Origin: Adineta vaga | Taxonomy: Eukaryota > Animalia > Rotifera | DNA length: 64,000 bases | Assembly (NCBI GenBank): GCA_021613535.1 | Contig: CP075495.1 | Location: forward strand, 868,001-932,000 | Reading direction: 5' to 3' | Shown: one piece after another, positions 36,127 through 43,222 of the stretch | Position numbering within the stretch: the first letter of the stretch is position 1 | Layout of the letters: each line of letters starts with the position of its first letter | Notes under the pieces: model-generated | Seen by the model: the letters and a program-made list of their open reading frames with translations, nothing else | Database searches by the model: none | What the model was told of the DNA's origin: nothing | Made by a program: the position numbers and the translations under genes

Positions 36127-36703
36127 ATGCCACGAGTTATTACTACATCAATTCGACCATTCTCCGAAAGATCTTGTGGAAAGCTGGATCTTCCGCCTAC
36201 AAACAATCCTATTATTACCGTAAAAACTTCATATTGACTAAACTTCTTTATTGTTCTTGTCTTTATTAATTGAATAGTCATCAATATTGAGTGCACGAAA
36301 GCAAAGACATGAGGAACGTCAAAAACGAGTATTGAATAAATCAACGAGAGAAATTCCAATAGAATTTACCGTCAATAACAATGATCAAAGTCATTCATCG
36401 CCACCACCTCCAGTAGGAAAAAGATGACGATATGATTTATTTCTCTCTATTCAAATAGGTTATATCATCTGCAATAGTTCATCCAGCGTCCCTTAACGAA
36501 ATTTTACGTGAGAATAAAAAGTAAATGATATTTTGTCAAAAGTTTTCATCTAGATGATTGTTTTCTGTTAGATCGTATGATAAACGTAAGAAAAGGTATC
36601 GACGATGTTTATATGCTCTTGATTGCAATTATTTTGTATTGTTGGTCTTTTAGCAATTGGTGGAACTGTTTTCGATGCTTTGCAGAATGAGCAAATCTTC
36701 TAA
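36127..36703 (+). pseudogene. Truncated duplicate of exons 1-4 of the Hog-domain gene at 39085
   Basis: Exons and introns are near-identical to 39085-39660. The TM-coding exon 4 is frameshifted, and no mucin or Hog exons follow. Confidence 0.8.
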
Positions 36704-37449: not shown

Positions 37450-38564
37450 ATGAATTTAAAATTAATCTTTTTATTAATGATATCATTGACATTTGGTACA
37501 TTAATTGGATATTATTTTCGACACGTAATGTCAAATAGTTTATCGTATTTACCAAATATAAATCTTCAATTTGATCAACATAAAACATTAAAATTAGGAT
37601 CACATATTCAATTGATTGATTTTAATAGAACAATTACAAATAATTTTACTTGTATTAAATCAAAAATATTATTTGATTTATTTCAAACAACATTTTGTTT
37701 ATATGATACTAAGAAAGATGTTTATGTTAGTGGAACAATTATGAGTCAAAAAATTTGGGAAGAAAATCTTGTTACAAAAATTTTACGAATATTATTAAAA
37801 AATCCTGATTATGGTAAGATAATTTATCTTTCCTATATTTATATAGAAAAAGTATTGTTTTTCTTTTGTAATAATAGCTATGATTGATATTGGTGCGAAT
37901 ATTGGTACTTATACAATGTATTCATCATCAATTGGTCGTAAAACAATATCAGTTGAATGTTATCAACCAAATATAGATCGACTTGTTCGAGCTATACAAA
38001 TTGAAAATGTTTCAAAACATATAATTTTAATTGGAAATGCGATTTATAATCAATCAGGAGAATTTTTAGAATTATCAAAAGATAATTCAAATATTGGTGG
38101 ACAAGGTATAATAACAAATGAAACAATCGAACAATCATCATTAACATCGACTGGTTTTCGAGGTTATTTAATAAATAGAAATTTTTGAAAATATATCAAA
38201 TTTTATATTTATAGTTATTACAACACGTTTTGATGATTTATATCCTATATTAATTAATAATCAAATTTCAAATGCAATTATGAAAATTGATATACAATTA
38301 TCGGAAATATTTTTAGTTCAATCAGGATATAAAATATTTGATTCAATTAATATAATTTTTGTACAAATGGAATGGTCTGATATTAAATTAAATCGATATT
38401 ATGCAGATTTTATTATTGAATTTTTTACTCAACGAAATTATTTACCAGTAGCAACGAATAATTGTCAAATATTAAATTCAACAACAACGAATTATACAAC
38501 ATGGGGTACACCACATGATATTTATTGGATTAAGTCAAATTATTATCAAATTTGTCAAACTTAA
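37450..38564 (+). CDS. FkbM family methyltransferase with N-terminal signal/anchor (3 exons)
   Basis: IDIGANIGTYT and MKIDI motifs; introns at about 37815-37877 and 38163-38214. Confidence 0.85.
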
Positions 38565-39084
38565 AAATTTCGGAATATGTTCATCAATCATCTATCAAAA
38601 GAGTACAGTCTACGACGAATGTTTAAGAGAAACTTTTTTTTCTAGACATTAATAAGTAGCTATCATAATAAAAGACTCTTTTAATATTTCGTCTATTTCT
38701 CACCTATAACTATGTGCTAGAGAATGGATACATTATGTATGATTAGAATAAACAAATTATCGAATTGATTCTTAGAACTCATTCAAATACACATACCTTA
38801 TTCGAATACAATGATTCTCATAATATATACAAGCGTGACACTTATTGTTTTGATCATAATGATATTAAAATAATTACATCGATATAATAATTTAAATTTC
38901 ATTAATTTTCTTTTATTTTCCTTACAAATAAAAAACAGCCGTATGGCTTTTTACCAAACAAATCTGTATTACACGTACATCTTATAGAAATGTATGTCAG
39001 AGCAATCGAATATTGATTTATAAGCAACTCATTCTTTTCCAACTCGTGTACATTTCATTCCTTTGTTTACAGTGAATAGAAGTT

Positions 39085-39828
39085 ATGCGTCGTATTGTCA
39101 CTGCATCAATTCGACCATTTTCAGAACGAACTCGTAGAAAACCAGATCTTACACCTGGAAATAATCCTATTATTACCGTAAAAACTTCATATTGACTAAA
39201 TTTCTTTATTTTTCTCGTCTATATATCAATTGAATAGTCATCAATATTGAGTGCACGAAGACAAAGACGTGAAGAACATCAAAAACAAGCATTAAATATC
39301 TCAAAATCTTCAGCTAAATCAACGAGAGAGATTTCAGTAGTATTTGCCGTCAATAACAATGATCAAACTCATTCATCGCCACCACCTCCAGTAAGAAAAA
39401 GATGATGATATGATTTATTTCTCTCTGTTCAAATAGGTTATATCATCTGCATTACTTCATCCAGCGTCCCTTAACGAAATTTTACGTGAGAATAAAAAGT
39501 AAATGATATTTTGTCAAAAGTTTTCATCTAGATGATTGTTTTCTGTTAGATCGTATGATAAACGTAAAAGCAAATATCGACGATTTTTAAAAATTTTACT
39601 TCCAATTGTTTGTATCACTGCTGCATTAGCGATTGGTGGAGCACTTTTCGGTACTTTCTATAAGTCACCAACAACAAGTAAGTCAATTCAGTTTTGTTCT
39701 TAAGAATAATAAGAACATTGCCAGGTCAAACTTTCCATGGGTTCTTCTTTGAAAAAAATCTTAGAATTAATCAATTTTTTCTCTCGTGATCTTGATACTT
39801 ATTATTTTGTTTTGTTCTTTATTTTAGC

Positions 39829-39863
<35 letters not shown>

Positions 39864-41229
39864 GTACGACTAGTAGTAAGTTTCTCGTTCTATCATTGAA
39901 TTAACAGAAATATCTTTTGTACTTATTAGCAACAACATCAGCCAGTAAATTCAACGAAATCATCTTTTTATAATTTTATTCTTTAATTCTTTTTCAGCAA
40001 CAACAACAAGTAAGTTTCAATTCGTGAAAACATCAGTTAATACTTATCAAAACTCGATTCATTCTATTAGCTACATTCACATCAAGTAAGATCACATTTG
40101 TCTTATACAAAAAATCATTATTTCTTTTTTCGTAGCAACAACAACCACAACAACCACAACAACAACGTGTAATTCGATGACTTTCTCATTTGAATTTAAA
40201 TTACTTTTTTGTTTTTTAGCAACATCATCATCTACCTCAAGTACGAGTACAAGCACAACTTCTGAAACAACAAGTAAATATTTATAGTACGTCAAATAAA
40301 ATTGTTCATACTTTTATTCTAGCAACGGAAACAACGACATCAACAACTACAGAAAGTACAACAACAACCGGTAAGGATATTCCTTAAATAATTGTAAAAT
40401 ATTGAATAATTTGTATAGCATGTTATTTCGGTGATGATTATGTTCATTTAACAGATGGAGGACAACGACAAATTAAGAATTTAAAAGTTGGCGATCGAGT
40501 TTGGTCATTGACTAGAGATGATCAATATTTAATTGAAGATCGAATTATGGTTATACCACATGCTGGACCAAAAACGCTAAGTTTGTATAAAATCATTTTC
40601 AATTGAGATTAATCATTTAAATGAATTTCTTCAAAATTAGCTGATTTTTATACATTTACAACGATTGAAGAACAAGCAATTAGTTTAACCGATACACATT
40701 ATCTCGTTATTTTTGATAAGAAAGATAAAATAATGAAAACAATTTCAGCTTCTCAAGTAACACTTGATCATCAATTAGTTATGATTAATCGTACAATAGA
40801 TTTGAAAACAATTGTATTAACAAAACGTATTGGTTTCTATTCACCAATAACAATAAGCGGATATTTACTGGTTAATAATCTTTCAACATCAGTTTATAGT
40901 GATTTGTAAATAACATTAATAATTCAACATATAAATTTCTTTCTTGTATTTTTTTCTCTAGTTTTCATGCATCCCATGATTTTCATCATGGTTTGACCGG
41001 TCCAGCTCGTGCTTATTACAATCTAACAATATGGCTTTTTGGAGATAATTATCATCCATTTGGATCTGATATATCAGAAGAATTGCATCCATTATCAGCT
41101 TTAGTTATAGTTATACATGATTCAATTCAATATTTATATTCTTCTTTACTTTTACCCTTTTGTATTATTATAGTGATCTATTTAACTCAAAGAAATTTTT
41201 ATCTAAATAAAGTTTCTAGTTTAGTTTGA
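39085..41229 (+). CDS. TM anchor + micro-exon-encoded Thr-rich stalk + Hog (Hint/SRR) autoprocessing domain, 14 exons
   Basis: Manual GT-AG splicing gives one open frame: 39085-39177, 39238-39390, 39437-39498, 39550-39677, 39828-39875, 39930-39944, 39998-40009, 40071-40085, 40136-40168, 40220-40273, 40323-40370, 40419-40580, 40641-40905, 40962-41229. Hint motifs A|CYFGDDYV...LKVGDRV, LTDTH, GFYSPIT.SGYLLVNN. Confidence 0.85.
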
Positions 41230-43222
41230 ATCCGTGTCTTTAATAAGTAATCCATATGTTCGAATGTTTTCAGGGAGTTGAACAACCCAAACATCATCAT
41301 TGGCACAGTAAATACCATCGGGATTTACAGCTACTTGTAACATAATTTTGTAAGACTTCTTTCCGAGTTTAGTGTCTATAGTAGCTGTACCAACATAAGA
41401 TTTTTCAACAAAAGTCGGTCTTGGAGAACAATAAACACCGTCCCCGTAAGCCGTCGTTCTTGCCGAACGAAATCCTTTGTTATAAATACTAATAGCAGCA
41501 TCAAAAGGTAAAGTATCAGGATTGACTTCGATGTTCAAATCAACAAAATCTTCTGCTTTTGCATTTTTTGTTCCATGAAAAGCTCTATGCCAGTTTTCAT
41601 CATCTCCAAACGGTTCTAACCATTTCTTATCGCCATATCTATTTAATACTTTCCATCCGTGTCGATTCCAACCAGTTGGTTGAATATACATTTTTTTTCG
41701 GTCCAATGGACCAATAAGAAACGTTCCAGTTTCATTTGTAAAATCTTTATCTCCAAGTTTATCTAAACATGCAACATCAAATGTTGGTCGATACAATAAT
41801 GGATGTATTTTATTCACTACAGATTGTTTGAATTGATTCTTTATTCGTTTCGATAGTTCTTGTAAATCTTCTGCTGTATTATCTTTCGGTACTGTTACTA
41901 AATAAACAAAATTCATTGAACTAAGATATACATTTGTTATAACAATATTTTTCTTCTCAGTATTATGTGCTATTGCTAATCGTTCGATAATTTGATCAAG
42001 AACTGGATGTGATCGATTTTCTTTAATTGTACGATCAAATGTTTGAATAACATTGAATTCATCTTCTTCACCAGTAAATTCATTAATATTATCTAATTTT
42101 AAAACATATGGTTTATGTTCAAAACCAATATCAGCAAAATTTCCAAATGTATTATAAAGATTAACATCTTGAGTCGAATCAAAAAATAAACATTGGTGAT
42201 TTTCATTTTCAAATAATTGATTAATAACATGATAAACTGTATCCTTTTGATTTACTTCTCCCGATGGTGATTCGGATAGAATTGATCGAGTATATTCTTC
42301 AGCTTTTCTAATATTTTCATTTTCGGGATCGGTTATTTCATCAATATCTGGTAAACTATCATAACAAGCTTTTAAATCAGCTTGTTCTTTCAAAATGATT
42401 TCTTTTTCTTCAGGTTTCACTATATCCCATAGAGAAACTGGTGGAGGAACAAAAATATAGTTGAGAAAAACATTTTCATTCTGTTTTAATCCATTAATAG
42501 ACAATGGTCGTTGATTTTCATTGCTTTCTTCAAACACATCATTTGATATTTGCTGAAAAAGATCATTAATACCGATATTTTCTTTAGTAATATTTTTTAA
42601 TAAATTTCTAATAAATAAATTATTCGAACTTGCTTCATTCTGAGCACAAGCAAATTGAATGAATGTTCCATCTATCGAATGAATTGTACATAAACCTTTG
42701 TTTTTCATCGAAGCTGAAAGAAATACAAAGAACATTTTCTGATAATTCTTAAACTAATTCCTTACAATTCGATGTTGATAAATCATTTGATCTATATGGT
42801 CTACAACAATCTAAGATAAATATATTCACATACGATGAATTCTTGTCTAATATACGTTTTAACATTCGATCAAAATTAATCCCAAAATCTTCAACATCTC
42901 TTTCTGTTTTGATCCAAGTATCATTAATCGGTATCAAATAATTTGTACCGTTTACTTGATAACCATGACCAGAGTAATAAAACAAAACTATATCACCATG
43001 TTGAATTGTCTTTGAAAAATTGATGATCTGTGTAGTCATATCATATTTCTCTAAATCCGATGCTATAACCACATCGAAACCAATTTTTATTAGTAAATCA
43101 TTGAGCTCTTGAATAGTTTCAATCGATTCATTAAGTTCATTGTCTGTTCGTTGATAACTTGCATTACCAATCAAGAGAGCGATTTTTCGATGGTTCAATG
43201 AACTTTCATCCGAAGTTGCCAT
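41221..43222 (-). CDS. Caspase-like (peptidase C14) protease fused to a PARP/NEURL4-like ADP-ribosyltransferase domain
   Basis: ATG 43222; intron 42714-42765. Caspase motifs RKIALLIGN..Y, FYYSGHG, ILDCCR; C-terminal AFHGT...YGDGVYCSP...MLQVAVNP...IRTYGLLIK. Confidence 0.85.

Follow-up and report, generated by a model that had tools for sequence, protein, structure and literature searches.

The window analysed here, a stretch of 64,000 nucleotides (nt) from the bdelloid rotifer Adineta vaga (assembly GCA_021613535.1, contig CP075495.1, positions 868,001 to 932,000 of the forward strand), is AT-rich (29.5% G+C) and carries, at positions 39085-41229 of its plus strand, a predicted gene of 14 exons for a protein in which a Hedgehog-type Hog module follows a membrane helix and a stalk made up almost wholly of Thr and Ser. 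An initial annotation had put forward this open frame; when rebuilt, it measured 1356 nt, with 451 codons, one terminal stop and 13 introns of 46-150 nt that are all GT-AG, and every string that had been quoted from its product was recovered (the membrane helix, A/CYFGDD, LTDTH, GFYSPITISGYLLVNN, HDFHHGLTGPARAY, ELHPLS and the hydrophobic tail). The path through the frame with the fewest introns was dropped as biologically poor, and the model with short consensus introns was preferred. Its exons are given below, together with the residues to which they align in P0001, the public ortholog from Adineta ricciae (CAF1484815.1 / A0A815RZI8, 442 residues).

39085-39177, plus strand: exon 1 (93 nt, phase 0), with the start codon and a basic N-terminus; P0001 residues 1-30.
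39238-39390, plus strand: exon 2 (153 nt), coding for a Ser/Lys/Arg-rich, predicted cytoplasmic part with a Pro run at its end; P0001 residues 32-87.
39437-39498, plus strand: exon 3 (62 nt), weakly similar to A. ricciae in protein sequence and in the same phase.
39550-39677, plus strand: exon 4 (128 nt), with a basic cluster, the membrane helix (codons 39593-39661) and the start of the stalk; P0001 residues 107-142.
39828-40370, plus strand: seven stalk micro-exons of 48, 15, 12, 15, 33, 54 and 48 nt, coding for nearly pure Thr/Ser, at 39828-39875, 39930-39944, 39998-40009, 40071-40085, 40136-40168, 40220-40273 and 40323-40370.
40419-40580, plus strand: exon 12 (162 nt), with the Ala221/Cys222 junction (Cys codon 40421-40423), Hint block A and His268 (40559-40561); P0001 residues 221-273.
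40641-40905, plus strand: exon 13 (265 nt), with Thr291 (40688-40690), His294 (40697-40699), the last Hint strands and Val359 (40892-40894); P0001 residues 275-361.
40962-41229, plus strand: exon 14 (268 nt), with a stretch resembling the sterol recognition region (SRR) of Hedgehog (HDFHH..GPARAYY and ELHPLS), a hydrophobic segment (41131-41187), a basic tail and the stop; P0001 residues 363-439.

The alignment to P0001 runs exon by exon and in order, with identities of 73-80% in the three Hint exons (80% in exon 13) and of 39-47% in exons 1, 2 and 4, and the public P0001 model joins all parts of the architecture. Exact spliced mapping of the A. ricciae locus (L065) gave exons of 93, 150, 65, 134 ... 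162, 265 and 244 nt, against 93, 153, 62, 128 ... 162, 265 and 268 nt in the window; the phases are identical, and where lengths differ (exons 2, 3, 4 and 14), they do so by a multiple of three each time. This locus also shares its gene neighbors with the window, namely a methyltransferase upstream and a caspase converging from downstream, and the Adineta steineri locus has the same Hint exons as the window gene. All of the stalk micro-exons are symmetric (phase 1 to phase 1) and have good splice sites. In a DNA alignment of A. vaga, A. steineri and A. ricciae, four successive micro-exons (15, 12, 15 and 24-33 nt) align together with their acceptor and donor sites, the intervening introns diverge or change length, and the orthologous loci hold the same kind of micro-exon array. 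A tandem-repeat finder returned CAA runs only, so that the micro-exon units do not represent recent repeats of DNA. By this cross-species conservation, which excludes chance, the predicted 14-exon model is a real frame.

Deposited relatives with the same architecture, all bearing automatic names only, include P0001, A. steineri P0070 and an A. vaga paralog (UJR14333.1). The public ortholog models mishandle the micro-exon zone (L064, 4889-6163; L065, 5083-5387): the A. steineri model P0070 skips five candidate Thr/Ser micro-exons within a 1275-nt 'intron', and the A. ricciae model P0068 reads through introns and thereby inserts sequence that is not Thr/Ser.

For the identity of the C-terminal module, the exons of the gene were searched singly, with P0001 standing in where a whole protein was needed, in a Pfam scan and in the fold prediction. 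Against the Pfam Hint profile (PF01079; curated cut-off 29.7 bits), exon 12 scored 27 bits over profile positions 13-56, and exon 13, which is above the cut-off by itself, scored 38.6 bits over positions 67-161; the two thus match the profile in the correct order. P0001 scored 98 bits over positions 8-211 of 213, and when the contigs of the A. vaga assembly (100.8 Mb in six pieces) were searched with the same profile, the locus reached 63.8 bits, in line with the Hint assignment made by the initial annotation. Its further claim that a Hedge signaling domain is missing also stands, as the N-terminal exons 1, 2 and 4 had no Pfam match, HH_signal included. In a sequence search of solved structures, exon 12 aligned without gaps to the Hedgehog chains 1at0 and 6tyy over residues 4-43 (weak matches), and exon 13 had no match. 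Eighteen subfamily sequences went into an AlphaFold model of P0001, in which the N-terminus is disordered, a long helix covers the membrane segment, the stalk is again disordered (predicted local distance difference test, pLDDT, below 50), the beta Hint core is confident (pLDDT about 90), and helices lie at 367-388 and 405-441. The structures closest to this model in a Foldseek search were 6tyy (TM-score by target 0.88) and 1at0 (0.84), with root-mean-square deviations of 1.9-2.9 over 146-147 columns, followed by bacterial intein-like domains and inteins.

Upstream of this module, the predicted protein begins with 117 residues that contain 25 Lys/Arg and 9 Asp/Glu and lack a hydrophobic signal peptide. 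The membrane helix follows at residues 118-140 (Kyte-Doolittle 2.46 over 19 residues), preceded by eight positive residues within 15 and followed by one, an asymmetry of charge that points to a type II orientation with the N-terminus inside. Adjoining this anchor is the stalk, in which 74 of 85 residues are Thr or Ser (87%); judging by this composition, it is probably O-glycosylated, perhaps densely so. The membrane-anchored Thr/Ser stalk of the initial annotation was found again with the charge pattern of a type II protein, although it is longer than the earlier estimate of about 75 residues. The Hint module begins at Ala221/Cys222, and the protein closes with a second hydrophobic segment (residues 420-438; Kyte-Doolittle 2.04) and basic residues after it, a combination present in all 15 of the subfamily members checked. 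This conserved tail looks like a second membrane anchor, in which case the precursor would probably be held at both ends already before any cleavage.

The residues that would carry out such a cleavage were counted over 18 subfamily proteins. Three of the five Hedgehog active-site residues are retained, that is, Cys1 (Cys222, invariant in 18/18) and the Thr and His of the TxxH motif, which in LTDTH are Thr291 and His294 (Thr69 and His72 of Hh-C; the His is present in all 18 proteins, as is Thr or Ser at the Thr position). A small residue (Ser, Gly or Ala) precedes the Cys in 14 of the 18. The position of Hedgehog Asp46 is taken by His268 (His47 in the numbering of the subfamily), with His in 16 of 18 proteins; this equivalence is given by the strand EDEII..[D/H], shared with the Asp-bearing A. 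vaga paralogs L019 and L020, and by an identical spacing to TxxH, the subfamily having one extra residue in an earlier hairpin before His47. Processing in cells persists in a Hedgehog mutant with the same exchange, D46H (PMC12054796, Fig. 1 legend); the best structural match of the P0001 model, 6tyy, is the structure of a D46H mutant. In the SRR-like region, the P.R.YY motif is kept, as is the His of the HWY motif (17/18), the Trp-Tyr of which has become Pro-Leu/Ile. That Cys1, TxxH and His47 are so strictly conserved speaks for catalysis. The exchange of Asp46 for His is also widespread elsewhere in A. vaga, where the loci L002, L005-L009, L012, L014 and L022 (motifs FLH, FIH and MLH) have kept Cys143, or have Asn there, yet bear a His exactly at position 46.

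The gene is one of many in its genome. Sixty profile matches, by the grouping adopted here, make up about 42 Hint loci in A. vaga, and at least nine paralogs share the three-exon Hint structure, with exon 13 identities of 42-61%. The same architecture recurs: in at least five of these nine, the Cys is preceded by a hydrophobic helix and by coding stretches rich in Thr/Ser, and two paralogs from a more canonical Hog branch, L016 (C1:13329875-13330465) and L018 (C1:13380562-13381068), join a hydrophobic helix, 15-17 successive Thr and a Hog module of canonical type (ASCYA motif) in one uninterrupted frame, which makes the architecture independent of splice prediction. Among public subfamily models that start with an N-terminal signal anchor, the Hog module lies behind a stalk or another extracellular part. 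In P0014 (A. steineri), P0042 (Rotaria socialis) and P0050 (A. ricciae), EGF-like or Cys-rich repeats, and in P0014 FG-GAP repeats, precede it, either replacing the stalk or adjoining it, so that the cargo appears variable and the Hog module with its C-terminal anchor constant. With exon 13 as the query, 52 relatives were found among 1.84 billion representatives, and all of the named ones are bdelloid (Adineta, Rotaria and Didymodactylos). These sequence comparisons place the gene in a branch, confined to rotifers, of a kind of Hog protein already known. A six-frame, genome-wide search for HH_signal (PF01085) at an E-value of 0.001 gave no match, in a search that had no positive control and in which a domain split by introns may escape. 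The N-terminal exons have no paralogs in the genome except in a partial copy 3 kb upstream. One further locus, L061 (C3:18694200-18699600), is a copy of the paralog at C3:17141295 in which the equivalent of exon 13 is frameshifted and the His of TxxH is replaced by Asp; it is likely a pseudogene. No relevant study of rotifer Hog or Hint proteins, including the deposited bdelloid ones, was found in the literature.

To our knowledge, Hog domains outside Hedgehog are common and almost unstudied, and what is attached to the upstream fragment is unknown for most of them. The nearest parallels in design are Thog of Xiphinema and Hoglet of a choanoflagellate, in which a Hog module without Hedge likewise follows a near-pure Thr/Ser stretch, of about 70 residues in Thog and about 200 in Hoglet, compared with 85 here; the Thr runs of these two proteins were judged convergent by Burglin in 2008 (PMC2362128). 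Whereas Thog and Hoglet have a cleavable signal peptide and hence a secreted upstream fragment, the A. vaga protein has a predicted cytoplasmic part of 117 residues and a signal anchor, and it differs from them further in its second, C-terminal hydrophobic helix, its stalk of seven micro-exons and an active site with His and Val substituted. With Drosophila Hh-C (1at0, 6tyy) it shares the Hint fold, Cys1, TxxH, the GDRV strand, the P.R motif and the His of the SRR; it departs from Hh-C in having no Hedge, in the exchanges of Asp46 for His, Cys143 for Val and HWY for HP[L/I], and in its transmembrane-like C-terminal helix. Lineage-specific expansions of Hog with new upstream parts are likewise seen in the warthog, groundhog and quahog families of nematodes and in Lophohog of molluscs and annelids, the upstream domains of which are unrelated to the N-terminal exons described here, which are without a Pfam match.

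Building on the observed frame, domain, conserved residues, conserved exon structure and family, a course of events can be proposed in which the topology, the glycosylation, the cleavage and any lipid adduct are predictions. The basic, disordered residues 1-117 would stay in the cytoplasm, and helix 118-140 would act as a signal anchor, leaving the stalk and the Hint module to face the lumen of the endoplasmic reticulum and later the cell exterior, while the C-terminal hydrophobic helix and the basic residues after it would hold the SRR-like part at the membrane. By analogy with the Hint mechanism, Cys222 would attack the carbonyl of Ala221 in an N-to-S acyl shift aided by Thr291 and His294, and the resulting thioester would be resolved by a nucleophile, possibly a sterol or another lipid with His268 as activator, or equally water. 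Two products would result: a mini-mucin stalk, anchored in the membrane and probably O-glycosylated, and a Hog fragment that is likewise held at the membrane. This reading, in which the gene encodes a bdelloid-specific Hog precursor without Hedge that has both ends in the cytoplasm and is cut at Ala221/Cys222 into these two products, is favored here with moderate confidence.

Several points weigh against it. The position of Hedgehog Cys143 (motif J) is occupied by Val359, with Val in 16 of the 18 subfamily proteins and Cys retained by the other two, both early-diverging, and in Hedgehog the mutations C143A and C143D abolish processing in cells (PMC12054796). Exon 14 by itself has no Pfam match, so that the SRR is recognizable only in part. 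The exon junctions are predicted from comparison with other species, and the topology and glycosylation from hydropathy, charge and composition. Lastly, no A. vaga product of the gene was seen in a word search (8000 candidates scored). To that extent the gene is hidden, as the initial annotation had it, although orthologs from A. ricciae and A. steineri have been deposited (as 'Hint domain-containing protein').

Among the alternatives, the one that fares best is that cleavage proceeds by cholesterolysis, as in Hedgehog, and leaves the stalk anchored at both ends, by its helix and by a C-terminal sterol ester, as a glycosylated loop on the cell surface. The SRR-like region with its P.R.YY motif and the His of HWY, the agreement of P0001 with the Pfam profile as far as position 211 of 213, and a His at the position of the general base, where the D46H mutant of Hedgehog remains competent (PMC12054796), are all in keeping with a sterol as the nucleophile, and the C-terminal membrane helix would place the active site beside the bilayer, where sterols are. 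In Hedgehog, however, the branched thioester intermediate that the sterol attacks is reported to be carried by Cys143, described as essential (PMC12054796), and this residue is Val here; moreover, the Trp-Tyr of HWY has been replaced by Pro-Leu/Ile. Replacement of the equivalent of Cys143 is on record for Hog domains of mosses, red algae and some protists, which work by an unknown chemistry (PMC2362128). As Asp46 is His and Cys143 is Val, sterol transfer is uncertain, and the doubly anchored loop is regarded as possible but unlikely.

A second alternative is that the Hint module does not cleave at all and that the intact, two-anchor membrane protein uses the Hint fold as a binding or structural ectodomain. 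Two named residues of the Hedgehog active site, Cys143 and Asp46 (PMC12054796), are indeed missing, as would be expected of an inactive module. The invariant Cys1 and TxxH His, together with a small residue before the Cys in 14 of 18 proteins, are nevertheless hard to explain without catalysis, and the persistence of Cys143 in the two early-diverging members suggests that it was lost later, while the rest of the site stayed conserved. A module that never cleaves is accordingly judged quite improbable.

Least probable is that the model is an artefact, with no splicing between the exons for helix and stalk and those of the Hint module, or that the gene is dead and its locus silent. Sequence can hardly prove exons as short as 12 and 15 nt, the public ortholog models disagree in the stalk zone, and the empty word search fits a silent locus; set against this are the length differences from A. 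ricciae in multiples of three with identical phases, the micro-exons and splice sites conserved in three species, the P0001 model that links all the parts, the lack of an alternative signal-peptide start between the stalk and the Cys exon, and the same design in one frame in L016 and L018. The release of a downstream toxin by the Hint module, as in polymorphic toxin systems, was rejected because nothing follows the Hog domain.

If the favored reading holds and the precursor is cut into an anchored stalk and a membrane-held Hog fragment, the upstream fragment could not leave the cell, and the Hog module would be put to a use other than the release of a lipidated signal. Whether Cys143 is indispensable, as claimed in 2025 (PMC12054796), is also put to a natural test by a subfamily that keeps Cys1 and TxxH with His at position 46 and Val at position 143. 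Should the stalk be lipidated, a second, Cys143-independent Hog route of protein lipidation would be at hand. A bolder extension, ventured as a speculation with rather poor prospects, is that these proteins form a rotifer-only two-anchor class of Hog that, with a His general base and no Cys143, lipidates the tip of the mini-mucin and so makes glycosylated surface loops with a length adjustable via the micro-exons. With about 42 Hint loci and no detectable Hedge, A. vaga recalls the nematodes, and the question of why Hog genes multiply can thus be put to bdelloids as a second group of animals. As one member of a family with orthologs already deposited, the gene has only modest practical value.

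The surroundings of the gene were examined as well. Upstream, at 36129-36700 (plus strand), lies a partial copy of its 5' end (promoter region, exons 1-4 and introns) that is 86% identical overall and has nearly identical introns. Its exon 2 has an 18-nt in-frame deletion, a 2-nt indel breaks the frame in the membrane-helix exon, and the similarity ends with exon 4, with no Hint exons after it; the copy resembles a tandem duplicate that has been truncated. A single contig of A. ricciae bears several full copies of the gene. On the minus strand, an open reading frame of 504 residues (41221-42735) runs towards the Hog gene, its coding end sharing 9 nt with that of the Hog gene; its positional counterpart in A. 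ricciae matches Peptidase_C14 (caspase) and has a caspase-NHL gene next to it, and this neighborhood is conserved in both species. A gene with two short introns (37450-38565, plus strand) separates the partial copy from the Hog gene; the A. ricciae gene in the corresponding position matches Methyltransf_7 (PF03492).

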